Under the pieces are notes generated by a model. The model searched no databases. It was not told where the DNA came from and was given only the letters and a program-made list of their open reading frames with translations. Shown piece after piece: positions 12,989-55,509 of a DNA stretch of 64,000 nt; the stretch's first letter is position 1, and every line of letters starts with the position of its first letter. Location: the IMG/VR virus record IMGVR_UViG_3300024239_000015, positions 1 through 64,000 of that record. One strand, given 5' to 3'. A program made the position numbers and the translations under genes.

Positions 12989-13810
12989 TTAAGACGTTAA
13001 GACTTTCAGAAGCATCATTCGTTCCACAGGGTCTTTGTGTTTGTTGATAGAAGCACGTATCCGATCGTCGCTGGACATACTCGTCCAGTGGTCAGCTTTT
13101 GCCATCCCCAGCACCAGCTGTTTGACCTTAAAGGGTTTTTGTTTCAGTAGCGTGTTGTTATCCCCAAAGATCTGCAAGCCAAATCGCCCAAAAGGAATAC
13201 AGTCGAGCTCTTTCCCGTTAGTGTACTTCGTGTGCCACAACGTGTACCCTTTGATTGCTCCTGTGTGAGACTCTAAAAGTTGCAACTGTGGGAAGTAAGG
13301 TTTCGCTAACAAGTCACAAGGACTATGGGTTAGGATCGTCGTCGCTTGCTTGAGTCCGGGATGACGAGTCGCTACGCGTTCCCACGGTTCTGTTTTCTGA
13401 CGCTGTAGATGCGCAAAGACGTGTTGTTCTAACGCCACTTGAAACTTCTGAGCAGGAGTGGTGATTTCCCGAAGCTCAGCGTAAGGAAGTATCCGCTGTA
13501 AGTCGGAGTACGTCGGGTAGTAAAACTGCACTTGCGTGACTTGCCCTGTTAAAGGCGGAAGCTCACGATGGATAAACGCGAGCTCATCCAGTAGCACCGT
13601 CGCTAAGTCTTCCGCCTTTACACGCAACAGGACGTCTTTCTCTACGGATTCCATTAAGTTACGCAGAACCGTCCGCACGTTCACCAAAAGAAAAGGCGTT
13701 TGTGTTTTTTTCTCTTTTACGTAGGCTTCGATGGCCAACGCTGTCCCAATCGACAGCGTGGACATTTCTTCTCCACACGCTCTGCTTTGTAACGCTAAGA
13801 CACCTCGCAT
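12989..13810 (-). CDS. Conserved jumbo-phage protein (gp66-like position)
   Basis: 273-aa ORF between the SbcD-like and ChmC-like genes; likely start at MSTLSIGT. Confidence 0.6.
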   Translation of the reverse strand: MRGVLALQSRACGEEMSTLSIGTALAIEAYVKEKKTQTPFLLVNVRTVLRNLMESVEKDVLLRVKAEDLATVLLDELAFIHRELPPLTGQVTQVQFYYPTYSDLQRILPYAELREITTPAQKFQVALEQHVFAHLQRQKTEPWERVATRHPGLKQATTILTHSPCDLLAKPYFPQLQLLESHTGAIKGYTLWHTKYTNGKELDCIPFGRFGLQIFGDNNTLLKQKPFKVKQLVLGMAKADHWTSMSSDDRIRASINKHKDPVERMMLLKVLTS

Positions 13811-14934
13811 TGCAAGTCCTCCAGTAATTGTACCACACGTAACTGTAGCTCAGCCGTAACACCTGTACGCGTCATACGTTCTTTCACTAAGTGAGGTAAG
13901 TTTGTTGCGGTGAGTGACGTGCCACGAAATACAGGAACGTCTGTAGGGTCTACACGACTCTCTGTTAGCTCTTCTTCACGTACCCCTTTGGTGTCCCAAT
14001 AGAACTGAGGAAACTCTTGTCGTAAAGCTGCTACGCCCCTTAGAATCGAGTCTGTACTACTGGCTTTGACACGTAAGTAACTACGAGCAGGAGTGCTCTG
14101 TGCGATTTCACGTATCTCGTCATACGCCGCTTCTAACGACAGACCGATGCAGTCAATCGTTCGGTACACTTTCGCTTCTGCGTTCTCTACAAACGCCCAC
14201 CCTTTACGAGAGCCTCTCACCCACACTCGTAAGTGTCCTTTCGGTGCTTCTTCGTTATGGGCGAGTCGGTTGTGGGAACCCGCCACGAGGATGTTCCCAC
14301 GGTGTGAGTGTTGGTGGATATGCCCACAGAGTATGTACTGCCTAGCTAACGGCTGCCACTCACTGCTACTGTGCGTAGCGTGTGGTACATGCGGTGGGAG
14401 TTGATACTCAAACGCGCCATGCATGAAAATGAAATCCACTTGCGCTAAGCCGTGAGACTCTAAAAGGCGCACCGCTTGACGGTGTGTATCCGCTGGATCG
14501 ATGCTCCACTCATCCGGTACGTATAAAACCGTCATCCCGTTCGGGAGGGTTTCGATTTCTAACTGCTCTGCGTAATAGAGCTCACAGTCTATTCGCAGTA
14601 GACGGTTTAATGTCACTAAAAGTCTGGACTGTTTCCAATCGTGGCTCGGTGTACCTTCCAGTACCCGTAACCAAATGTCGTGTTCTTTGCAGTAGCGGAG
14701 TAACCATTCAAAAAACTCATGAATGTCAGTCACACAGTGCGCACTTAATTGCAAGTCACGGTCAAACAAGTCCCCTTGAAACGCAATACAACTCACCAGC
14801 TTGGGGTTCTCAGCAAGGATTGCTTTCTTTACCCCAGCGATGATCTCTTCCGTCGGAGTCCGGTGGTGTCCTAAGTGGACGTCGTGAAAACTTAATAACG
14901 TGAATCCCTCACGCCCAATCGTCGTCTGTGTCAT
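13795..14934 (-). CDS. SbcD/Mre11-like metallophosphoesterase nuclease (phiKZ gp65-like)
   Basis: FHDVHLG, GDLFD, GTPSHD, FMHG and GHIH motifs. Confidence 0.88.
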   Translation of the reverse strand: MTQTTIGREGFTLLSFHDVHLGHHRTPTEEIIAGVKKAILAENPKLVSCIAFQGDLFDRDLQLSAHCVTDIHEFFEWLLRYCKEHDIWLRVLEGTPSHDWKQSRLLVTLNRLLRIDCELYYAEQLEIETLPNGMTVLYVPDEWSIDPADTHRQAVRLLESHGLAQVDFIFMHGAFEYQLPPHVPHATHSSSEWQPLARQYILCGHIHQHSHRGNILVAGSHNRLAHNEEAPKGHLRVWVRGSRKGWAFVENAEAKVYRTIDCIGLSLEAAYDEIREIAQSTPARSYLRVKASSTDSILRGVAALRQEFPQFYWDTKGVREEELTESRVDPTDVPVFRGTSLTATNLPHLVKERMTRTGVTAELQLRVVQLLEDLQCEVS

Positions 14935-15469
14935 CGTCAGTCAGCCATGTCTGTGACAACGCCTGTGTGCTCACGCTCGACTCCGTCGTCCCAGTGACGA
15001 TTCCATACCGTTGCAAAATCGCAGCCCACGCTTTGGAGTGGTCTGGAGTTTGCTCTCTACGGGTGGTGTAAAGCCCCTGTAAGGTTTTAGGAAGGGCGAT
15101 ATCCATCGAAAGGTTAAACGCTCTGGCTTTACTTTGGAGTTGGTCTACGACCGTAGAGATGCTTTGTCTCTCGTCGTATTTCGTGTAGGTAGTAGGCGTT
15201 GCAAATAAAGGAGGTACAGTAAATAAGAGCTGCCCGTTTTTTACAACGTGTACAGGTTTGAATTGTCCTCCTTGGAACCCTCCTCCTGCTAACTCTACCC
15301 AAGGCGTTAAGTCGACTTTCTGAGTCGCTGTGAGTAAAGGTAAGTACTTACTGACAAACACATGCTCTTCTACACTTACGATTCGACTTCGGTTTTCATT
15401 AATGAGCGTATCCATCGCTTCATTCATTTCTATCAACCCTAAGTCTTCTAAACTACGTGCGTTAGCCAT
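14909..15469 (-). CDS. Hypothetical conserved protein (186 aa, acidic C-terminus)
   Basis: Coupled overlaps with both neighbours. Confidence 0.7.
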   Translation of the reverse strand: MANARSLEDLGLIEMNEAMDTLINENRSRIVSVEEHVFVSKYLPLLTATQKVDLTPWVELAGGGFQGGQFKPVHVVKNGQLLFTVPPLFATPTTYTKYDERQSISTVVDQLQSKARAFNLSMDIALPKTLQGLYTTRREQTPDHSKAWAAILQRYGIVTGTTESSVSTQALSQTWLTDDDTDDDWA

Positions 15470-16804: not shown

Positions 16805-19800
16805 CCATGTATGTTCGGAGAGTTCGCAAGGCTCTCCCGCGTCTCACGCTTCACAGCGTGGGTACGCAGCTGTAGGCTTTCCCTACAGTGCAGACTATAC
16901 CATCTACTCTCCTTTATAGAAGAGCAGCACCACATTTCGAAGTACCTTGAGTTTTCACTCTAGCTTGTACCCCTACTCCCCGCTACGGGACAGTCGTTGA
17001 ACACACTCCGTAATCTGTGTAAACAAACCCTTAGGAGCTTCGCTGCTGATTGACCATTTTACCTTTCGGTTTCTTTTTCATCCCCTTAGCGCCGTTTCCG
17101 GTTTCTTTTCAGCATAGGGCATCTCTACGATTGTTTCTGGGTTTCCCCACCTGACGTTCAGAAGACTCGCGCCGTCCTAGTGATCTCCGTGTACCGCACT
17201 TGCTGCCAAGTACTGTAGTTTACTGTTTCCAGCACGGTGTTGGTTGCAGAGCTTTAGGCTTTTCCAGCGTTTAGTGGTGTACGCATCCACCCTCGCGGAT
17301 AGATGGGACTTTAACATACTAACTAACGTTAACGTATTCGATTTGATATATTGACCATCTACCCCCGTTGATGGACATTCCCCTTTGTACCGTATTTCTT
17401 CGAGCTCCCACTTCCGCACAAAAGTCCAGAGTCGACGCGTAGTGCTTAACTTCGCCGGTCAACTTATTGGTTACTTTTATCGGAAAGGCCGGACGTCGCG
17501 AGTTAGGTGACATTTTCTTAGGCTTTCTCTTAACGACAGTTCCCACAGAACCTTCCTTCTCGTCAAGATGTTTTGCTAGGAATAAACCCCTGACTCTAGT
17601 CCCCCTATTTATCGACTGCCATATCGAACTCGTAGACACATTGAAGTATCTGGCAGCTTCCCCGTAGCTCTCGAAGATATAAACTTCTTTTCCATCCTTA
17701 GAAGTCAATACAACTTCGCGCGGGGCACCATTTGGTTTCTCGCCGACATTACTGGAATCGATTTGTTTCCAACTCGAGTCCGCGTAACGCACGTTGTATT
17801 TTTTCAAGAACGGAGTTTGCTGTGTGGAGTTCAGATAAACGTGTAACCTACTCTGGGACGCTTTCAGCCACGCGGCTGCTTTGTTTAAACCCAAGAACGA
17901 ATTAACTTCCTGCGTGGTTAAGTCTAAGACCTCTACAGGACGATTATCTTTCTTCAGCCCTAACTCGTAAGCGTGCCATAAGTTTCTTTTCCTATCGACC
18001 CATTCTAGGTTACTGGCTCTGTTGTTAAATTTATCGCCATCGATGTGATTCGTGACGTAGTGGTCGTGTTCTTTGTGATGGAACGTTTCGGCGACAAGAC
18101 GATGGTGTGTCATCGTGCCTTTACCGCGTATGTTCATCACGTTATACCCGAAATGTGAGTTGAAGTACGCTAAGGGACAATAATCTAACAAAACATCAAT
18201 TACTATCCCTTCTTCGGAAATCACAATCCGAGGAATCTGGGGGTGGTGGTAATACTTAGGGTATCTTTTCGATTCTATCAAACCTTCGCGCATCTTTCAT
18301 TTCCTTCTCATGCTAGTCGCATAAGATAGATGCATGTTAAGTTAATTAATGTTATTTCATCGCAGTTCATGCCGGTTATACAGTGAGTGGATACACTGAC
18401 TGAGTTTATAGCCGGGTCTTTCTTTATCCTGCTGATAAAGAATTGCTGCATGGATAGTTCATGCAGTGTGGGCTTTGCTTTCACGTAGGGCGCGACACCT
18501 ACGCAGTTCTTAAAAGAACGTCCCCAGAATTACCTGGGATAAAAGACTATATCTTCATCCGTTATAAGTAGGGATAACGGAGCTCCTCGTTTCGCATAGT
18601 TTTAAACTACTTAGCGCTAGGCTAACCACCTGACCTTTCGATCGCTTGCGGGCTACTCTACTCCCTTCTCTTTCTTATTGCAAGAAAGCGGTTTCGATAG
18701 TCGTTGAACACATTCCGTAATGTATACTGCTGATACACCCTTAGGAACTTCGCTGCTGATAGACCCAGACTCTTTGTTTTCAAACCGTCACGTAGACCGT
18801 TTCCAGTTGCGTTGTGGTAAAGAGTTTTAGATAGATCGTCCCAGCAGTTAGAGGAGTTTGGCGTTACTGTTACCAGTAAAGGAAACCTAAGTCAATTTCG
18901 ATGGAAAATACACGGGATACCACGGATCTCTCGATGTTCGTGGGGTTGTGTACCGATGGGGTTATAAACACCAACGACGTAAGGGGAGTCGCTGATTAAC
19001 TCATCAAAGAGTGCATCCAGCTCTGGGTTGTAAGTGTGAGCGTTTTCAGACAGGAATTTCTCAATCTGATTCGGACCCCACCCACGTTTCAAAAGCTTAT
19101 TGGTGAGCTGTGCTTGCAATACAGCAATCGCAGTCGTCCACGGAATCTCCAGCTCTGAGTATAAGTGCCATCCTGTCAAGGAGTTCACGACGTTACGGAA
19201 GCTGTAGTTTGCACGTGTACCGAAGATGTGTTTACGGAACCATCCCTTCTTCCCACCTAGAATGTTCTTGTACAGGTTGTTGTAGTACGCACTGAGTTGT
19301 ACCACACACACCGTTGCACGACTCTCTGCTTTCTTTAACCGTACGTTCTGGTACGCTTCCCCTAAGTCGAGAATGGTGTAGGCTGCATCAATCGCGTCTA
19401 CCATTCCGAAGTCGGCGTAGGTACCCACCGCTGTTTTCTCTGTAATAAACGCAATCTTGTTTGGGATTGGTAGATATGGAGTAAACACCAAGTCACGGTT
19501 CTCACGCACCAGCTCCATGACGTTGTCTTTGCGATCGGGTGAGCCTGAGTACAATCGGTTATCCACGAGGATACTTAAGTACAGGTCAAAGTGATCAAAG
19601 AAGTTATTCAACCCCCGTTGAAACCCATACGCTTCCAGTTGTTCTCCAAACGCACTATGACCACTCGGGATACGGTAGTAGGGGTCACATAACCACCGCA
19701 TGATACTGATCCCGTTCTTCTTAAACAGTTGGTCTAAGATGTACCAGATTGTTGGGTTAATCAACGCTTTCACGCCCCGTGGTGCGCGTATCCATAACGT

Positions 19801-20097
19801 AGACTCGATTGGACGCTCGAGAATACTCATGGGAACGGTACCACACAGCTCACAGCGCAGTTTAATGCTTGCTGCATACTGCCCTGTGGTATGCCCACAC
19901 CCACACGACGGGAGGACGCTGACTTGGTCTCCATCGTACTCTGTCCGTATTAAATTGGACAGAAATTGTTTTGCTTGCACGGTACGTGCGTCGATGTCAT
20001 TGATACACACCGGTGGCACGGACTGTGCGCCGTACATTTCCACGTAATCGACGAGTTCTAGATAGACGCCATCGTCGTTTTCGTTTGTTTCTACCAC
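16541..20097 (-). CDS. Non-virion RNA polymerase beta'-like subunit, N-terminal part (phiKZ gp55-like), three exons: 20097-18895, 18472-18359, 16804-16541; 526 aa when spliced
   Basis: Zn finger C.CG..C..C; KKGWFRKHIFGTR; spliced junctions read IFHRN|PTLH and GMNCD|FDGDALN, restoring the NADFDGD-type active-site motif. Confidence 0.92.
16805..18358 (-). mobile_element. Group I intron 2 of beta'-N, carrying an HNH endonuclease in the P1 loop
   Basis: 5' site GAT| (U) pairs with IGS GTCCCA; P4 GCTG/CAGC; P3 CACCAC/GTGGTG; R GTTCAACGAC (16993-17002); S GTATAGTC (16893-16900); ends in G. Confidence 0.9.
17319..18293 (-). CDS. Intron-encoded HNH homing endonuclease with NUMOD1-type DNA-binding repeats (I-HmuI-like)
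   Basis: HRLVAETF..VTNHIDGDKFNNRASNLEWV; C-terminal repeats such as FESYGEAARYFNVSTSSI; AAGGA RBS. Confidence 0.92.
   Translation of the reverse strand: MREGLIESKRYPKYYHHPQIPRIVISEEGIVIDVLLDYCPLAYFNSHFGYNVMNIRGKGTMTHHRLVAETFHHKEHDHYVTNHIDGDKFNNRASNLEWVDRKRNLWHAYELGLKKDNRPVEVLDLTTQEVNSFLGLNKAAAWLKASQSRLHVYLNSTQQTPFLKKYNVRYADSSWKQIDSSNVGEKPNGAPREVVLTSKDGKEVYIFESYGEAARYFNVSTSSIWQSINRGTRVRGLFLAKHLDEKEGSVGTVVKRKPKKMSPNSRRPAFPIKVTNKLTGEVKHYASTLDFCAEVGARRNTVQRGMSINGGRWSIYQIEYVNVS
18359..18472 (-). CDS. beta'-N exon 2 (114 nt, 38 aa, not in the ORF track)
   Basis: Translates PTLHELSMQQFFISRIKKDPAINSVSVSTHCITGMNCD, matching the beta' segment (R.)PTLH...N.D. Confidence 0.9.
18473..18894 (-). mobile_element. 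Group I intron 1 of beta'-N (422 nt, no ORF)
   Basis: 5' site GAAAT| pairs with GTTTC including the U-G wobble; R GTTCAACGAC (18700-18709); S AAGATATAGTC (18545-18555); ends AAAG before CCC ACA CTG. Confidence 0.9.
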
Positions 20098-20206: not shown

Positions 20207-22003
20207 TTACCAGCGAGACTGGAAGCTTTGACCGTTGTTAAACGTCGGTGCGTTGTAGCCAGTGCTGAATGCATTTGCAGACAGACCGCCAGACAACACG
20301 TCTACGTTTGCACGAGGTACGACGCGAGTTTCGTTTTGTGTGTACTCTGGAGTCAGAGCCGCACCTACTTCACCCAACGCAGTCACCAGGGCTAACAGAA
20401 CGCGATCGTTTAACATCACTTCAGTAGCGTAGTCAGTGATCACCACGTCACCTAAGTATTTCTTCTGCAGCTGACACAGTACAGTCAGACGTTCTTCGGT
20501 AGAGGCACGACGTGGATCGTAACACTCATCGAAACGGTAGACTTGGGTTAAGTCTTTGTCACCTTCCATAGCAGAGATTGCCATGTGGTCGAAGTCACGG
20601 ATGTCGGACTTCACAGAGTGGCCATTGGTGTAGTAACCTAACGGAACCCGTGTAGGGACGACTTTACCGATAGGACCAGAACCTAAGCGCTGGAACACTT
20701 CAGAGAACTTACCAGAGGTCAGGTTATCACACGCTTGTGTGAAACGCTTCACTGCCGTGTCAGAACCCGCACAGGCGTCACGTAACAGACTCAGTAACCA
20801 GGTGTCTTCACCTGTTTCTGGGATGTGTACTACGACCGCTACTTCTGGGTGAACGAATTCAGCGAAGAAGCGGTTTACGTCGAACGTAGGTTCGTTAGCA
20901 CCCACACGAGTACCTGCTGGCAGTAAACCTTCAGCGGCCATTTCAGCAGACAGCACGTCTAAGCTACGCTCAGCGCCATGGCGGTGGAACGTGTTGATGT
21001 ACTGACGGCTACGGATTGGTTCAGCAGCTAACGCTAATGCCAACACCATGTGCTCAGGCGTGGTCACACCGGCGTTCAGTGACAGATCGGTGACAACCAT
21101 ACGCGCTTGGAAGTGCTGAGTAGTAGCACGAGCTGGCTGGTATGGCGTTTCGATCATGCGTGGGCCTACGTAGACTAAGTCTAAGAAGGCAGACAGCTGA
21201 GCCATGTTACGAGATTGACCCGCTAACAAACCACCATTGGTGTTGGTGTTCACCAACGCAACAGAAGCAGTGATGTCACGACGTACGGGTAAACCACCTG
21301 CTGTTTTAGCAGGAGCTGACGCTAACTCTACACGGCTACGTAATTGGAAGCCTGCTTGGTTTGCACCTTTCATAGAAACGATGTACTGACCTGCTTCCTG
21401 TAACGCTGCTTTTAAGTTGTACTGTAAAGCAGACATTGCACGGACTAACACGTCGCGTACGGCTTTGGCATCGCCTGGAGCAGTTTCACGGGGTACTACA
21501 CTGAAGCCTACGAATGACGCCGTTGGCGGTAAACCTGCTAACGCTTTAGACACCAGTGGTTGGAACTGAGGATCACGTGTTAAGTCACCTACGGTTTGTG
21601 GGTACAGTAACTCACGTTGACCTAAGTTGATGCTGTCGTTGCGTTTGGCTAACATCGGCAGTTCTTCTGCAGTACCTGCTAATAACATCAGGTACACCGC
21701 AACTTGCTTTTTGTACTCACCCACGATCGCTACAGCTGACACTGGGATCAGAGTCGTTTGTTGATCCAGTTCCAGCATGGTGAACTTGAAGTTGTCACGG
21801 TTGGCAGAGTCTACCATTGGCTTCAGAGTTTCTAAGTAGCCAGACAGCACTTGACTGTGTGGGCTTAACGGCATCACACCGCTGGTTTGTGCTGCAAACA
21901 TAGCAGCTAAGTTTTGAGCGACTGGTTGTTCACCAGTGAACGTTTGTTGTTGTTCTGCTTGTGCCTGAGTCGACTTCTGGCTGGCAGTGTTCAGTTCTTT
22001 CAT
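20207..22003 (-). CDS. chmA: Chimallin, major nuclear shell protein (phiKZ gp54-like)
   Basis: 598 aa directly upstream of beta'-N; Q-rich flexible N-terminus; RVPLGYY..DIRDFDHMAI-type motifs; strong high-expression codon bias. Confidence 0.82.
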   Translation of the reverse strand: MKELNTASQKSTQAQAEQQQTFTGEQPVAQNLAAMFAAQTSGVMPLSPHSQVLSGYLETLKPMVDSANRDNFKFTMLELDQQTTLIPVSAVAIVGEYKKQVAVYLMLLAGTAEELPMLAKRNDSINLGQRELLYPQTVGDLTRDPQFQPLVSKALAGLPPTASFVGFSVVPRETAPGDAKAVRDVLVRAMSALQYNLKAALQEAGQYIVSMKGANQAGFQLRSRVELASAPAKTAGGLPVRRDITASVALVNTNTNGGLLAGQSRNMAQLSAFLDLVYVGPRMIETPYQPARATTQHFQARMVVTDLSLNAGVTTPEHMVLALALAAEPIRSRQYINTFHRHGAERSLDVLSAEMAAEGLLPAGTRVGANEPTFDVNRFFAEFVHPEVAVVVHIPETGEDTWLLSLLRDACAGSDTAVKRFTQACDNLTSGKFSEVFQRLGSGPIGKVVPTRVPLGYYTNGHSVKSDIRDFDHMAISAMEGDKDLTQVYRFDECYDPRRASTEERLTVLCQLQKKYLGDVVITDYATEVMLNDRVLLALVTALGEVGAALTPEYTQNETRVVPRANVDVLSGGLSANAFSTGYNAPTFNNGQSFQSRW

Positions 22004-22221: not shown

Positions 22222-23397
22222 ATGGTATGTGCGAAAACGTCTTCAAGACTCATGTTTACCAAGGAGCAGATTGTGCTGACTTTATTTTTGTCTCCGAGTG
22301 TAAAGGCTTACGGAGGCGTCCGTCTCGGACAGTATCCGTATATAGAAAGACGATTCAGTGAAAACTTTCGAACGGTAAGGGACCATTACCGGACGAGAAA
22401 CCTAGCGGTGAAGAACACACACTTCCTCGTGACTGCATTAGACTCTTTACCGATTGCAGATACAGGTTCACCACATCGCTTTGCAGACGTAGCTGCATCC
22501 TTAGCTCCCAACTTACTGAATCGGTTTGGAGTAGGAAGTGACCGTTACGTAGGAAAGTTTCAAGCCACCCAACGGTTCTTTGGAAGTAACGTCTACGAGT
22601 ACCTGTACTTAACACAAAGTTACTACGACGAGTTTACACTCAAACCGAGCGAGTGGATGTACTTACGTCCTATCCAAGTGCTGAGCCATCCTCGTACAGA
22701 TTTTGATTACTCTATCCTCGCAGGACAGATTACCACCGAAGAATCAGGGCACGCGTTTATTACCATTGACTTTGGTTTACTGGCATTCCAGTACCACTGT
22801 TGGCGTAAAGAACACTTGAGGAAAAACGGTGGAGTCTTTTTGGGGTCAGTACGACAGTTTCTAGTGCAATACCCATTAGCGAACTTAATCCCAAGTTACA
22901 ACAACATCGCATGGTACAACACGGTGTTTCGTAGTGCCATAGGGTACACGCCTGCGTTATCAGTCAATCGTCCGCCTCTCGCGATTCCTGACTCGTACAC
23001 CTACGTGAGGGAAACTGCAGCACAGTTTCACGCAAACTTAACGCGTACAGGACGAGCTTTGCAAGCAGAAGCGTTACTCCAGTGGATACCGAGTGTGGAC
23101 ATGTATGCAAGTAATGCAGCTGAGGACACCTACTGTTACCCTACAAGAGTGCACTCCACTCCCGCAGAAGTCGCGCGATGGTTTTGTCAACTCGATTGGT
23201 GTGAAACGGTTTTTGGAATTCTGTTTCAAAACGAAGCGATCAAGAACAACCGTGCGTTAGTGAACGAGTACTTAAAAGACTACCGTCGGTTAGTGAATAC
23301 AAAACTGTTACAGGACGTTGCGATGCCGTTAGATGCACGCGACTACTTAAACAGAAAGTTAGACACGATACTCGCGTACATAACGGAGGGAGCGTAG
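22222..23397 (+). CDS. Conserved jumbo-phage protein (phiKZ gp52-like position)
   Basis: 391-aa ORF divergent from chmA, as in phiKZ-like genomes. Confidence 0.6.
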   Translation: MVCAKTSSRLMFTKEQIVLTLFLSPSVKAYGGVRLGQYPYIERRFSENFRTVRDHYRTRNLAVKNTHFLVTALDSLPIADTGSPHRFADVAASLAPNLLNRFGVGSDRYVGKFQATQRFFGSNVYEYLYLTQSYYDEFTLKPSEWMYLRPIQVLSHPRTDFDYSILAGQITTEESGHAFITIDFGLLAFQYHCWRKEHLRKNGGVFLGSVRQFLVQYPLANLIPSYNNIAWYNTVFRSAIGYTPALSVNRPPLAIPDSYTYVRETAAQFHANLTRTGRALQAEALLQWIPSVDMYASNAAEDTYCYPTRVHSTPAEVARWFCQLDWCETVFGILFQNEAIKNNRALVNEYLKDYRRLVNTKLLQDVAMPLDARDYLNRKLDTILAYITEGA

Positions 23398-23459
23398 TGC
23401 TCCCTCCTTATGCTTGTCATTTTATGGACTGTTTAGAATTTAACCAAAAGGGTGTGTGT

Positions 23460-24692
23460 ATGTCAAAAAAATTAAACCGATTTTTAGCGCTGGAAAGTGC
23501 TGAGGTCGTAGAACAACGTTTGGTCGGTTCGGAAGAGCCTACGGTCGATGTAGAGACTGCAGCCGCAGAATTAGGTGAAGTAGAAGAAGCATTAGACGAA
23601 TCGTTAGACGTCCATGACGAACTGTCGGCTTTAGCAAACCAAGTACAGACTGACGCAGACAACGGTAAACTGTCTCAGGAAGCGTTAAGCTACGCGAACG
23701 CGTTGGCGCGTGTACATCTGAACCGCGTAGGTTTAGGCGGATTGCGCACCGGTATGGAGAGCACTTACTCTCCAGAGTCGATCGGTAAACGCGTGAAAGA
23801 CGTGTGGGAGATGGTGAAGAAGTTCTTCGCAGAGATGCTCAAGAAGTTGAAAGCTTTCTTCAGTAGTTCTAGCAAAAAGTCGGAAGAACTAAAAGAAGAG
23901 ATAAAGCAACAAAAAGTAAAACTTCAGGAACTAGATAAAGAGATCAAAGCCGCAAAAAGCGACAAGGCTGAATCCAAACAGATCCCTGTAAAGTTTACAA
24001 CAAAGAGCCGTGAGGTTCTCTTTCTGGTCGACTCTGATGGTAAACTACCTGATTTAAACAAAGCCATGTTGAGTTTAGATGAAGCTCTCGGTATCGTCAT
24101 GGATTCCTACTCGGAACGCTTAGACCAGTTCACGCGAGTGAGTAAAGACATCCAAGCGGCGACACAAGGAACGGCTGTTCCAGAATACACCAGCGCCGAT
24201 TTCAAGTTATCCTTAAAAGGTATGACCGTAGTGAAAGATGCTGTGAGTGGATACCCCACTCACAGATTAGATTTGGAGTACGGTAATGTAGCTTTGGGGT
24301 GTTATGAACCACTCGGTGATATCAGACCTTCGAACTTCGTAGAGAGGAGTCAATTCGCTCTGCTTCACGCGGAATCGGGCCTGGCGCACCAAGAGTGTAC
24401 TGTACCAATCCCCTCCATTTCTGAACTCGACTCCCTCTTAAATTCCGCCGAAAGACTATTGGCTGTATCTGAAACACTCGACCAGGCTATGGTAGGCTTC
24501 GCGCGAACTCTGGAGAATAAAGAATTTCCAGATGAAGTATGGGATGCCGCAGAAGATGCTGTTATGTTAGCGACTAAACTATCCAGTTCGGCTGCGTCCT
24601 ACGCTGTCTTTATACAAAAACAGAAAATCAGACTCTGTCGAGCGATTATCACTTACGTCGAGTTGGCTAAGGCTGAATTAGCTAAGTCGTAA
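23460..24692 (+). CDS. Probable internal head protein with prohead-protease-type propeptide
   Basis: Start MSKKLNRFLALES; acidic N-terminal region with A/S/G-x-E sites (ALE, SQE, GME), typical of phiKZ-type processed head proteins. Confidence 0.6.
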   Translation: MSKKLNRFLALESAEVVEQRLVGSEEPTVDVETAAAELGEVEEALDESLDVHDELSALANQVQTDADNGKLSQEALSYANALARVHLNRVGLGGLRTGMESTYSPESIGKRVKDVWEMVKKFFAEMLKKLKAFFSSSSKKSEELKEEIKQQKVKLQELDKEIKAAKSDKAESKQIPVKFTTKSREVLFLVDSDGKLPDLNKAMLSLDEALGIVMDSYSERLDQFTRVSKDIQAATQGTAVPEYTSADFKLSLKGMTVVKDAVSGYPTHRLDLEYGNVALGCYEPLGDIRPSNFVERSQFALLHAESGLAHQECTVPIPSISELDSLLNSAERLLAVSETLDQAMVGFARTLENKEFPDEVWDAAEDAVMLATKLSSSAASYAVFIQKQKIRLCRAIITYVELAKAELAKS

Positions 24693-31689: not shown

Positions 31690-32709
31690 CTACAAAATCA
31701 AACCTGAGCCCGTAGAATCGCTCTCACCACCTAAGGCGGACGTCTCTGGCAGACTGGCTTGTTGTTGTTGGATGGCAGTTAAACGCTCTTTAGCGATGGA
31801 GTACAGTTTCTCCACACCTACAGTCGTGATCACTAACTGTAGTTGTTTCAGGTCGTCGTCGTTTCCTGCTGGAGCTAATAACCCATCGCAGATGTACCCA
31901 GCAGCGACCGGTGGGTAGTAGTCTGGGTTACTGGACAAACTGAATAAACTGATTGGGAACTCCACGTCTTTGAGTTCGTCGTCGTTTAGACAGTAGTCAA
32001 TTAAAGCCAGTTGAGGTTTGACCTGAGTCACACGGTTGTAGAACACCCAGTTGATCACGTCCGAACTATCTACACGAGAGTTCTCACCAGAGACCGCACG
32101 AGAAATATACGACACTAAACGTCGTGCTTCTGAGTCGGCTTCTGTTGCAGTATAACCATCATTCAGTGGATCAGTCAGCACATAGAACATCGACATCGGT
32201 ACGTTACGTCCCCGTGCCATTTTGTCTAACGACTCGATGACCTTGACGTTGTTCTGTGCGCTCAGCGCAGATTCTGCTGAACCGATAAAGATCGCCACCA
32301 CAGGGATACCTAACTCTAACAAACGAGCCTGCAGTAACGATGCAGCGACGTTTCCACTTCCGCCTGTCGTAGAGGCCAGTACGATATTAAAATCGCCCGG
32401 TGCGTGTTTCTGAAGGATTTGTGGGATGTGCTTCTCAATATCAGAAGCCAACTGACCACGGACTTTACCTGCACCATCTTTCTTATCACCCAGTGGAACG
32501 ATATACACCGACTCCGTAGGAATAGCGTCGGTTAAGTTCGCTTTGGAGGTGTCGATATACGCGATTTCTAATTCCGCGTGTCCTGGGACTTGCTGCTCTA
32601 CCGCACTTTGAAAGTACGCTGCGTTGTTGATCCCCGCGCCACCACAGCCATAAATACGTAATGTTTTCTTCATTCTAGTTTCCTTCTTCAGTGTAAACCT
32701 ATGAGCCAA
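31690..32709 (-). CDS. phuZ: Phage tubulin PhuZ
   Basis: GCGGAGIN, IDTS, DGAGKVR, TTGGSG and DSSDVIN tubulin/FtsZ motifs; likely start MKKTLRIYG. Confidence 0.93.
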   Translation of the reverse strand: MAHRFTLKKETRMKKTLRIYGCGGAGINNAAYFQSAVEQQVPGHAELEIAYIDTSKANLTDAIPTESVYIVPLGDKKDGAGKVRGQLASDIEKHIPQILQKHAPGDFNIVLASTTGGSGNVAASLLQARLLELGIPVVAIFIGSAESALSAQNNVKVIESLDKMARGRNVPMSMFYVLTDPLNDGYTATEADSEARRLVSYISRAVSGENSRVDSSDVINWVFYNRVTQVKPQLALIDYCLNDDELKDVEFPISLFSLSSNPDYYPPVAAGYICDGLLAPAGNDDDLKQLQLVITTVGVEKLYSIAKERLTAIQQQQASLPETSALGGESDSTGSGLIL

Positions 32710-51643: not shown

Positions 51644-51683
51644 AGCTTACCCTTTCAAAAAAGAATCAAACAGAAATAGCAGA

Positions 51684-51711
51684 CAGAAGGGAGGGTTTCC
51701 CCTCCCTTCTG
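51684..51711 (-). terminator. Terminator hairpin
   Basis: cagaagggaggg-tttc-ccctcccttctg. Confidence 0.7.
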
Positions 51712-51725
51712 CTGTACACCAGGAC

Positions 51726-53138: not shown

Positions 53139-53162
53139 CAGGGAGAGCCGAAGCCCTCCCTG
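53139..53162 (-). terminator. Hairpin after the Tad1-like gene
   Basis: cagggagagc-cgaa-gccctccctg. Confidence 0.5.
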
Positions 53163-53166
53163 ATAT

Positions 53167-53790
53167 TTATTCAACCGCTTTCTCAAACTCTTCTGTCGTA
53201 TGCAGAAGCGCCAAGTCCTTTAAAAGCTGTGGGTCGGTGACGTGATCAAACAGCCGTTGGATGAGCTCGTAGCCAGCGTCATCCTTCACCCACCGTTTGT
53301 GTTCTTCTGTGGCACCGTCGGTGTAGACAGACACAAACCAGAACATCCCGTCGTCATAGTCGTCTGAGCAGAACCGTATCAGACGTTTCTCTGTAGAGTC
53401 TACCTGTGTCGTGCCTTCCGTACCGGCTGCCGTACGGCGCTCTGTACGCGCTCTTAAAGCGTGTTGTGCGCTACGTAACCCACGGATAGCGGTGGTGTTC
53501 TCAGGGCACGCAAACGCGGTTTGCTGATAGCACTGTAAGCGATGTTCGGCGATCGCTAATAAGTCTTCTACAAACACTCCATTAGCGCCTACTTCCTTTA
53601 GAGGACCTGTTTGAAACTTCACAGACCCTAAACTACCGTTTACTGTTTCGGGGTCTACTACGATATACTCGTCATACAGCGGCGCTCTTTCCGTCGTCCC
53701 GGTCCCAACGATTTTATTTGGAGACTGCGGTAACGGTGGTATTACAGCGCTTGCATTTTCTAAACTTAAGAGTTTTTCTCTGAGTGACAT
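53167..53790 (-). CDS. tad1: Tad1-like anti-defence nucleotide-signal sponge with a C-terminal extension of about 77 aa
   Basis: Y.EY.V..VKFQTGPLKEVGANGVFVEDLLAIAEHRLQCYQQTAFACPEN..A..L..RTERR..GTEGT matches the Tad1 pattern as recalled (IKFQKG..GV..SDLLEIVRDRL..FQ.GPF..REN..RR..DR..R.V.GT). Confidence 0.8.
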   Translation of the reverse strand: MSLREKLLSLENASAVIPPLPQSPNKIVGTGTTERAPLYDEYIVVDPETVNGSLGSVKFQTGPLKEVGANGVFVEDLLAIAEHRLQCYQQTAFACPENTTAIRGLRSAQHALRARTERRTAAGTEGTTQVDSTEKRLIRFCSDDYDDGMFWFVSVYTDGATEEHKRWVKDDAGYELIQRLFDHVTDPQLLKDLALLHTTEEFEKAVE

Positions 53791-53885
53791 TCTTCTTCCT
53801 CCACGAACAAGACCTTTAACAAAGCATGCCCTCCCATTGCAATGAGTGACATCGCTGCAATGAAGACCAACACCCCTTCTATCAT
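53766..53885 (-). CDS. Small single-pass membrane protein (39 aa), not in the ORF track
   Basis: MIEGVLVFIAAMSLIAMGGHALLKVLFVEEEE; coupled to both neighbours. Confidence 0.5.
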   Translation of the reverse strand: MIEGVLVFIAAMSLIAMGGHALLKVLFVEEEECHSEKNS

Positions 53886-54237: not shown

Positions 54238-54753
54238 TTACGAGAATACAGCAGCGTCTGTATGAGGAGTAATCGCCTCGATGATCCAGGTGTGGTGTGG
54301 AGCAGACTCAGCAAGGATCAAAAACGCGGGAATGGACTTTGCCGGAACGTCCTGCAGATAGAAACACTGAGGTTCCAGTTTCAACACGTGGTTGTTCAAT
54401 CGAATCCCTAGTTCGATCATTCCTGTTTCTGTGGTAAGTCCTGCGCCGCCTGTAGGTGTCATCAAACGGATACGGTCTATTTGTTCCGCTGTGAGGAAAC
54501 TATTGAACGCTTTTAGGGTGTCGTTCACGACGACTTTATCGTGACCTGCGACGTGAACTTGCGACTCGGCAGAGTGGTGCTCTGCGATGAATTGTAAAAT
54601 CAGCGCTTTGGCTTTGAGGGTTTTACCTGTTTGACGTTTACCAACGATGACGTTTACAGTGTTATGCATGGTACTCTCCTTTTTTTGGTTAAAGTGCCGG
54701 GTTTTTGAGCACCCGATAATCGATAAGGTTGATGGCTTTCCAAACACCTTCAC
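54238..54753 (-). CDS. Hypothetical protein with a P-loop
   Basis: VNVIVGKRQTGKT; likely start MHNTV after an AAGGAG RBS. Confidence 0.6.
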   Translation of the reverse strand: MKVFGKPSTLSIIGCSKTRHFNQKKESTMHNTVNVIVGKRQTGKTLKAKALILQFIAEHHSAESQVHVAGHDKVVVNDTLKAFNSFLTAEQIDRIRLMTPTGGAGLTTETGMIELGIRLNNHVLKLEPQCFYLQDVPAKSIPAFLILAESAPHHTWIIEAITPHTDAAVFS

Positions 54754-55105
54754 GTTTTTGTAACACGATGGGTTGGTAGAACGCTTGGTATAAAGAAGGG
54801 TTGTTGATCAACTCGTGGGAATCATCAATCACAGTAAACCCATATAGCGCAAGCTCATCCGAATGCGCGCAGTGCGCGTTAACGTTGATGTGTATGTAAT
54901 TGTGGTTAGTGGATCGAGCACGGATAATCACTACGCAGCTAGGGTCTTCCGCGACACGTCGACTGGCAGTTTCAGCTTTCTCCCCAAACCACGCGTACGT
55001 ACCCTTAGGGTTTTCAAATTTCGGTGGTTGTGTGGTGCGTGGTTCACCGCACCCTAAGAACAACACCGCCAACATGAGTAAAGCGCCCGTTAGAAACGAT
55101 TTCAT
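54689..55105 (-). CDS. Predicted lipoprotein (paralog 1)
   Basis: Signal MKSFLTGALLMLAVLFLG-C. Confidence 0.7.
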   Translation of the reverse strand: MKSFLTGALLMLAVLFLGCGEPRTTQPPKFENPKGTYAWFGEKAETASRRVAEDPSCVVIIRARSTNHNYIHINVNAHCAHSDELALYGFTVIDDSHELINNPSLYQAFYQPIVLQKREGVWKAINLIDYRVLKNPAL

Positions 55106-55107
55106 TA

Positions 55108-55509
55108 TCAGACTCCTTTCGTCTGTTCTATCTCAGGAATGTTAGTGATCACCCAATGGGTTCCGTTATGTTTCAGTACCAGTGGTCGGTAAAATACATA
55201 CCTCATTCCCAGATCGTCAGATCTCGAAACTGTCGGTTTAGTGACGTTAAATCCGAAGATTTTTTGTGTGGTGGTTGTTAGTCCGTCGTAACATTTTTTG
55301 TGTACGACGAAATTTGTATGCGGCCAACCACCAACGTCAGTATAACTGATCACCACACTACACTGGGATGGTTTCTGTACCAGTTGTTTGTCGTGTAATT
55401 CAACAACCCGCATTATTTCGTAGACAGAAAATTCCCTGAGTTCATTTGGGTCATCCGAACACCCAGTTAAAGTTAGTACCCCTATCAGGGCTAACAAAAA
55501 CACCTTCAT
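55108..55509 (-). CDS. Predicted lipoprotein (paralog 2)
   Basis: Signal MKVFLLALIGVLTLTG-C (LTGC lipobox). Confidence 0.75.
   Translation of the reverse strand: MKVFLLALIGVLTLTGCSDDPNELREFSVYEIMRVVELHDKQLVQKPSQCSVVISYTDVGGWPHTNFVVHKKCYDGLTTTTQKIFGFNVTKPTVSRSDDLGMRYVFYRPLVLKHNGTHWVITNIPEIEQTKGV

Follow-up and report, generated by a model that had tools for sequence, protein, structure and literature searches.

Canonical members of the Tad1 family, represented by CbTad1 (7UAV/8SMD), CmTad1 (8KBB) and SBSphiJ7 Tad1, are proteins of about 120-150 amino acids (aa) that end at the lid of the ligand pocket and carry an arginine-threonine pair for cyclic trinucleotides (CTNs) together with a Met-Trp hexamer interface. 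A different form is known from the nucleus-forming jumbo phage phiKZ, in which gp184 is a Tad1 and at the same time a minor capsid component of the inner vertex-binding complex; it undergoes processing by the head protease gp175. The protein interacts with the inner body and its injection has been validated by western blot; its N-terminus is wedged in the capsid, its C-terminal part is liberated and injected, and its gene is dispensable for growth. gp184/Tad1 acts on both CBASS and Thoeris, and no other anti-defence protein has so far been described from jumbo phages. Here we describe a Tad1-like protein encoded on the minus strand at positions 53167-53790 of a DNA stretch of 64,000 nucleotides (the window), which corresponds to positions 1 to 64,000 of the IMG/VR virus record IMGVR_UViG_3300024239_000015. 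Tad1 in a chimallivirus is already known from phiKZ, and the protein is therefore not a new kind of system. Our preferred reading, which on balance we consider probable, is that of a virion-delivered Tad1-type sponge of an uncultured chimallivirus, equipped with a lineage-specific accessory domain.

The gene and the successive parts of its product are as follows.

53167..53790, minus strand: complete coding sequence from the list of open reading frames (ORFs), with an ATG start, 207 aa plus stop and no internal stop
53758..53790, minus strand: leader MSLREKLLSLE, residues 1-11, a candidate capsid-targeting propeptide with an S-x-E head-protease site at its end (family conservation, likeness to phiKZ)
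53719..53757, minus strand: linker, residues 12-24, poorly conserved and predicted to be disordered (predicted local distance difference test (pLDDT), column conservation)
53401..53718, minus strand: Tad1 core, residues 25-130, three beta strands and a two-helix hairpin with the GTEGT lid at its end (sequence matches, AlphaFold2 (AF2), Foldseek)
53170..53400, minus strand: orphan acidic C-terminal domain, residues 131-207, predicted beta-beta-beta-alpha-alpha (AF2, homology searches)
53347..53364, minus strand: invariant DDYDDG motif, residues 143-148, at the predicted turn of the beta1-beta2 hairpin (family alignment, codons read by eye, AF2)

Residues ~25-130 are a genuine Tad1 homologue. 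The initial annotation, made from the sequence alone, had recognised a Tad1 motif string in this region; the string is present, and the similarity goes far beyond chance in phmmer, PHROGs and tblastn searches. Among PDB entries searched with phmmer, CmTad1 8KBB matches residues 55-130 (E=3e-11) and CbTad1 7UAV/8KBG matches residues 35-127 (E=5e-5), phrog_2428 matches the protein with E=1.7e-25, and tblastn matched 86 phage records, among them that of Bacillus phage SBSphiJ7 with its annotated Tad1. The protein, its close relatives and the core on its own all went without a family in a local Pfam-A scan, but this blank apparently reflects a gap in the library rather than evidence against Tad1, because relatives are listed under PF24729 Acb2_Tad1_hairpin in the protein source database. 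An AF2 model of the full-length protein, computed from nine input sequences, has strands at residues 26-30, 41-45 and 53-58 and helices at residues 74-89 and 96-121. The Tad1 fold that the initial annotation expected is thus predicted, and the top 20 PDB matches of the model in Foldseek are all Tad1 (probability 1.00). The helical hairpin is shared with Acb2, a cyclic-nucleotide sponge of the same joint family PF24729, which is not known to have an N-terminal beta-sheet. No Acb2 structure appears among the PDB sequence or Foldseek matches of the protein, all of which are Tad1, and a beta-sheet is predicted at residues 26-58; these two features place the protein on the Tad1 side of the Acb2/Tad1 superfamily.

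The phage that carries the gene can be assigned with the help of several marker genes in the window. These encode chimallin (20210-22003; phrog_4795, E=6e-49), the PhuZ tubulin (31693-32709; phrog_4733, E=2e-70) and several subunits of multisubunit RNA polymerases (RNAPs; phrog_3015, E=5e-162; phrog_2987, E=2e-109), along with a phiKZ-type DNA polymerase, a phiKZ-type tail sheath, a tail tube and an internal-head-protein homologue. On the strength of this gene set, the phage is a nucleus-forming jumbo phage, or chimallivirus, and here the initial annotation was right. It is uncultured and deeply divergent: megablast against GenBank phages returned no match, and its sheath is 33-37% identical to those of the nearest isolates. 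The gene is found with 100% identity on the 233,377-bp contig IMGVR_UViG_3300024239_000015 / Ga0247724_1000005 and again on the 116,042-bp contig IMGVR_UViG_3300024308_000022. Including this protein, the family comprises six proteins of ~200 aa that are 40-93% identical and occur in one uncultured chimallivirus clade only. One of them (P0003) is carried by a 206.6-kb phiKZ-like contig whose gene order is that of the window (an upstream gene for ~110 aa, the Tad1-like gene, small genes, tail tube, sheath, PhiKZ_VTX and DUF7193), and BLASTP recovers conserved neighbours at the loci L001, L002 and L004. The Tad1-like gene is a stable component of this clade.

The pocket for glycocyclic ADP-ribose (gcADPR) is largely preserved. 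Published contact residues were transferred to the protein via HMMER alignments, with the numbering offsets verified for each residue that the papers name. Among the 11 gcADPR contacts that Leavitt et al. list for CbTad1, eight are kept, namely G55 (here G62), R78 (R84), F82 (Y88, still aromatic), F87 (F93), N92 (N98), R109 (R115), R113 (R119) and G120 (G126). Mutation of F82/N92 or of R109/R113 abolishes gcADPR binding by CbTad1, and all four of these experimentally validated positions are retained (Y88, N98, R115 and R119). Within the family, G62, R84, N98, R115, R119 and G126 do not vary, and an aromatic residue always occupies positions 88 and 93. Judging from residue conservation, the protein would be a sponge for gcADPR and cyclic dinucleotides (CDNs) without canonical trinucleotide binding. 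It would sequester TIR-derived gcADPR, and possibly CDNs, in a pocket at the dimer interface, and this sequestration would blunt abortive infection of the Thoeris type, perhaps also of the CBASS type, which the phage nucleus cannot block.

The leader points to virion delivery, a more specific mechanism than the initial annotation had proposed. All six family members start M-S-L-x-x-x-[LI]-L-S-[LIV]-E, with M1, S2, L3, L8, S9 and E11 invariant even though the family is otherwise ~40% identical, and pLDDT in the AF2 model is below 50 across residues 1-23. A leader of the same style, with S-L-E at residue 11-13, is present in gp93, gp94, gp95, gp97 and gp184 of phiKZ, all five of which have been validated as injected. 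The phiKZ head protease cuts after Glu in S/A-x-E, and a cut at SLE-13 is documented for gp93. When the leader was searched as a regular expression at the annotated starts of 104 annotated phiKZ genes (86 kb), it was found in 6 of 25 structural proteins and in 1 of 79 others (Fisher p~6e-4). At plausible starts in the window, the pattern occurs in the Tad1-like protein and in one further product:

23460..24692, plus strand: internal-head-protein homologue with the leader MSKKLNRFLALE (phrog_2497 'internal head protein', E=1.9e-7)

The chances that the protein enters the head, loses its leader by a cut after E11 and leaves together with the DNA seem to us roughly even or somewhat better. The 11-residue leader ending in S-[LIV]-E would serve as a capsid-targeting propeptide that is cut off by the head maturation protease; the protein would then be stored in the head, leave it together with the DNA and act ahead of any phage gene expression, as reported for phiKZ gp184/Tad1. 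A second, differently built Tad1 with such a leader would suggest that injected signal sponges are common in nucleus-forming phages, in which they would cover a gap, since the nuclear shell gives no protection against abortive infection that relies on signalling. Such a Tad1 would likewise point to the short S-x-E leader as a portable tag by which cargo of this kind is recruited. A mechanistic analogy exists in the internal proteins of phage T4, such as IPIII, although there is no sequence relationship and packaging is inferred for the protein described here. The T4 capsid-targeting sequence is an N-terminal propeptide of ~10 residues that ends in x-x-E and is removed by the head protease, whose motif is L/I-x-E as opposed to the S/A-x-E of the phiKZ type. 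The mature T4 protein leaves the head with the DNA and can counter host defences at once; IPI*, for instance, is an injected anti-restriction protein.

Some leader-like stretches in the window deserve further comment. The ORF of the internal-head-protein homologue (23397-24692, plus strand) opens with GTG at 23397; read from an internal ATG at 23460, it encodes a phrog_2497 homologue of 410 aa that begins MSKKLNRFLALE, and the true start is probably 23460. The 168-aa product of 14909-15415 (minus strand, ATG start) begins MDTLINENRSRIVSVE and matches the regular expression, with S-V-E at residue 16; it is possibly a further leader-bearing protein or else a chance match. A match at 12989-13765 was discarded, as it lies inside a phrog_3229 protein and the profile of that protein begins upstream of it.

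The phiKZ gp184 precedent and the packaging-type leader were both missed by the initial annotation and are the most informative additions made here. gp184, as seen in the capsid structure 8Y6V (chain I), is the second-best PDB match of the protein. Both come from nucleus-forming jumbo phages, their Tad1 cores are homologous (39% identity over 71 residues; BLASTP E=2e-13), and they share a FAC-x-EN variant that lacks the CTN arginine. The leader of gp184 ends A-S-L-E at residue 13 and that of the protein described here ends L-S-L-E at residue 11. The order of the parts differs, however. In gp184, the leader is followed by an acidic linker, a capsid-anchor module (TTKDLP...YHVNGVDW...GIYGHE, ~57-108) and a C-terminal Tad1, whereas the present protein consists of a leader, a short linker, Tad1 and the orphan DDYDDG domain. 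The genomic settings are also different, with sheath and tube genes nearby in the one case and gp181-183 adjoining gp184 in the other.

The anchor module itself was located in phiKZ gp184 (L009:13470-14162), PhiPA3 gp096 (L013:661-1626), PS119XW (L014:1096-2538), D6 (L015:1057-1335) and Psa21 (L016:1057-1332). It is portable: phiKZ has it joined to Tad1, whereas PhiPA3 gp096 and the large PS119XW protein have different C-terminal regions after it. In D6 and Psa21 it forms a stand-alone protein of ~92 aa, the end of which coincides exactly with the YGH boundary. This module boundary suggests that a cut after GHE-108 may free a Tad1-sized product in phiKZ.

A number of observations weigh against virion delivery of a Tad1-type sponge, and they concern delivery, ancestry, fold and ligand sites alike. 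With respect to delivery, leader similarity is the sole basis on which packaging is proposed, and the leader pattern yields false positives, namely phiKZ gp209 and internal ATGs. The protein has no capsid-anchor module like that of gp184, the gene is surrounded by small genes of unknown function and not by a cluster of head genes, and the 64-kb window yielded no gene for a head protease. With respect to ancestry, the core is 45-57% identical to single-domain Tad1s of ordinary phages and 39% identical to gp184; because it is closer to the former, the protein may be either a gp184 orthologue or an independent recruitment. The closest single-domain relative with genomic context (P0009) adjoins terminase genes in a metagenomic phage contig, and no jumbo-phage marker genes occur in the examined stretch of that contig.

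The delivery points lend themselves to another explanation, in which the protein is a cytoplasmic two-domain sponge that is newly made during infection and never packaged. Its likeness to head leaders would then be coincidental, and the conserved N-terminus would represent a translation initiation context, a short amphipathic helix or a degron. Canonical Tad1 proteins do act after their expression in the infected cell, and the location of the gene in a block of small genes, its strong Shine-Dalgarno sequence, the missing anchor module and the shortness of a leader pattern with background matches would all suit such a sponge. It is harder to reconcile with six invariant leader positions right beside a poorly conserved disordered stretch, or with a leader that matches precisely those phiKZ proteins that have been shown to be injected, that recurs on the phage's own internal-head-protein homologue and that is enriched in phiKZ structural proteins at the significance given above. 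We regard the cytoplasmic sponge as the main rival, one that is rather unlikely yet to be taken seriously.

With respect to fold, the full-length AF2 model is mediocre (pLDDT 70; predicted template modelling score (pTM) 0.47), and its Foldseek TM-scores to Tad1 reach just 0.42-0.46 with a large root-mean-square deviation (RMSD), so that the monomer model captures the topology of Tad1 but not its exact geometry. With respect to ligand sites, three gcADPR contacts of CbTad1 differ, H29 being replaced by D40, R57 by L64 and N122 by T128; CmTad1 likewise lacks the arginine that corresponds to R57. CbTad1 R90/T97 (CmTad1 R88/T95) bind the phosphates of cyclic trinucleotides and support the hexamer, and neither is kept, the equivalent residues here being P96 and R103. 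The CmTad1 hexamer interface Q98/E99/M102/W103/K106 is not kept either and reads S106/A107/H110/A111/A114. The oligomeric state and the ligand range may therefore differ from those of characterised Tad1s.

As neither the R/T pair nor the hexamer interface is conserved, binding of cyclic trinucleotides in the manner of CbTad1 and CmTad1 is improbable, and the protein may form no canonical hexamer. Substitutions at the CTN site are reported for 6% of Tad1 homologues, which makes the loss a subfamily trait and not a reason to exclude the protein from Tad1. The initial annotation had contrasted QTAFACPEN with AGPFSSREN and read from it that residues in the pocket region differ. The difference is correctly described, as the phmmer alignment to PDB sequences confirms, and the change from R to P in ACPEN is real; it sits in the CTN site, however, and the gcADPR/CDN pocket is largely kept.

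Altered CTN and hexamer positions could also be taken to mean that the Tad1 fold has come to serve as a building block of the capsid or the inner body and that sequestration has been lost altogether. phiKZ gp184 was, after all, resolved within the vertex-binding complex, and some Tad1 homologues of other phages bear structural labels. A purely structural head protein would nevertheless leave it hard to explain, without ligand binding, why the gcADPR pocket is mostly maintained across members that are ~40% identical. In phiKZ, moreover, what is described as wedged in the capsid is an unrelated N-terminal module rather than Tad1, and the phage grows without the gp184 gene. A structural role of this kind appears very improbable. 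As to the labels, the designation 'structural protein' is attached to several single-domain homologues of Tad1 from Bacillus and Lactococcus phages (e.g. OK499977, MN150686, EU081845), a hint that virion association of Tad1-family proteins may extend beyond jumbo phages.

Beyond the sponge core and its leader, the C-terminal domain is the part of the protein that has no counterpart in described Tad1s, which end at the lid, whereas this protein continues for 77 residues past it. The initial annotation described an added acidic alpha/beta segment at residues 131-207, and this description holds. The nearest single-domain relatives (P0007-P0009) end directly after GTEGT, the domain is acidic in all six members (isoelectric point 4.3-4.6), and AF2 predicts the beta-beta-beta-alpha-alpha order. 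Modelled alone, it folds with a pLDDT of 87 and a pTM of 0.73 into three strands and two helices. The DDYDDG motif, V153, Y156, D158, G159, E175, L176, L180 and T198 are invariant in all six members. Residues 131-207 are a real, conserved, selected and lineage-specific addition to Tad1 and a genuinely new element.

An exhaustive HMMER search with residues 131-207 against 1.84 billion representative proteins returned only proteins built in the same way (P0002-P0005; 199-207 aa), each of which carries the domain at the identical place, and one spurious match. The latter (P0006, 500 aa; E=4.6e-4, five stretches) consists of identical tandem repeats that share only the word KDDAGY with the domain. 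The initial annotation envisaged the domain as a possible stand-alone gene, but none turned up in any library searched, that is, by exhaustive phmmer, a profile search among proteins of 44-140 aa, tblastn of GenBank phages and scans of IMG/VR and JGI metagenomes. In GenBank phages, no tblastn record covers the C-terminal part; a match in Cronobacter phage CR5 (E=5), within a virion protein of ~1,340 aa, is not significant. No relatives of the domain were found in PDB or BFVD with Foldseek (E<=0.001), in PDB with hidden Markov models, or in NCBIfam, Pfam and PHROGs, and an ESM Atlas search gave scores of ~0.54, which is noise. Two derivations from known parts were considered and rejected. A duplicated Tad1 core, which would have the same order of strands and helices, received an hhalign probability of 0.3% and no Tad1 occurs among the Foldseek matches of the domain; a relocated gp184 capsid-anchor module received an hhalign probability of 0.1%. 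The BFVD entry A0A1S6L1M7, a viral protein of 114 aa, aligns to the model of the domain with a query TM-score of 0.68, an RMSD of 3.2 A, a probability of 1.0, E=0.096 and 12% identity, and A0A1S6L1P8 of the same accession series ranks second in BFVD. A0A1S6L1M7 is possibly a distant structural relative and is kept as a lead only.

The position of the domain offers some indication of its role. In CbTad1, the lid over the bound ligand is made up of residues 116-122, and these correspond to residues 122-128 here, so that the domain is tethered within ~9 residues of the mouth of the pocket. As part of a virion-delivered sponge, it would be a lineage-specific accessory module, most likely used either for docking and retention in the head, as a functional stand-in for the unrelated gp184 anchor, or for tuning of the adjacent pocket or of oligomerisation. 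Being compact, well folded, conserved and located beside the lid, it is a tractable candidate for cargo retention or for the tuning of sponge specificity.

A bolder proposal is that the DDYDDG domain is a new functional module altogether, namely a head-docking and ejection adaptor for arbitrary anti-defence cargo or a second binding unit, for a ligand or a protein, that gives the sponge a wider range; we consider this unlikely. If the adaptor case were true, leader, Tad1 and accessory domain would exemplify a general modular architecture of 'pre-loaded counter-defence' in jumbo phages, with accessory modules swapped between clades (the gp184 anchor in one, the DDYDDG domain in another).

The initial annotation had speculated that the added domain might alter the ligand range, anchor the protein to the shell or a membrane, or inhibit another defence. 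Compatible with either delivery route is the possibility that the domain provides a second anti-defence activity or retunes ligand specificity, for example as an extra cap over the gcADPR/CDN pocket, through a small-molecule or metal site on the DDYDDG loop, or by binding a host immune protein. Its proximity to the ligand-closing lid, the invariant acidic hairpin, the strong conservation and the confident independent fold would fit such an activity, and with the CTN site of the core lost, a compensating function is conceivable. Against it, the domain resembles no sponge, enzyme or inhibitor represented in PDB, BFVD, Pfam, PHROGs or NCBIfam, and it never occurs alone or in other fusions, an unusual pattern if it were an autonomous anti-defence module. 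A second activity thus seems doubtful.

Three further features flank the gene.

53798..53802, minus strand: Shine-Dalgarno sequence GGAGG, read off the sequence, with the ATG 7 nt downstream
53139..53162, minus strand: GC-rich hairpin of 10 bp with a UUCG tetraloop, starting 4 nt past the stop codon
53887..54225, minus strand: conserved upstream neighbour of ~110 aa with a hydrophobic N-terminal segment (BLASTP)

The hairpin has a folding energy of -19.3 kcal/mol as RNA (z = -2.56) and no U-tract, and it is likely a transcript-end or stabilising structure. A second GC-rich hairpin, at 51683-51712 (minus strand), also lies directly 3' of a minus-strand gene, and the two may be transcript-end or stabilising elements of this clade. 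Homologues of the upstream neighbour adjoin the family member upstream at L001, L002 and L004 (BLASTP E 1e-10 to 2e-13), so that the neighbour is conserved at all four related loci, and its product is possibly a functional partner of the Tad1-like protein.

Farther along the minus strand, the adjacent genes 54689-55105 (138 aa) and 55108-55509 (133 aa) encode proteins with a hydrophobic, signal-peptide-like start followed by a cysteine (LGC and LTGC, respectively), which look like lipoprotein signals. The product of 55108-55509 has a weak match to phrog_9091, of unknown function, and that of 54689-55105 has no PHROG match. Elsewhere in the window, an HNH endonuclease gene (17322-18293, minus strand; phrog_59, E=3e-27) lies just downstream of the genes for the RNAP beta subunit (18895-20097) and chimallin, and it may be a mobile homing endonuclease.

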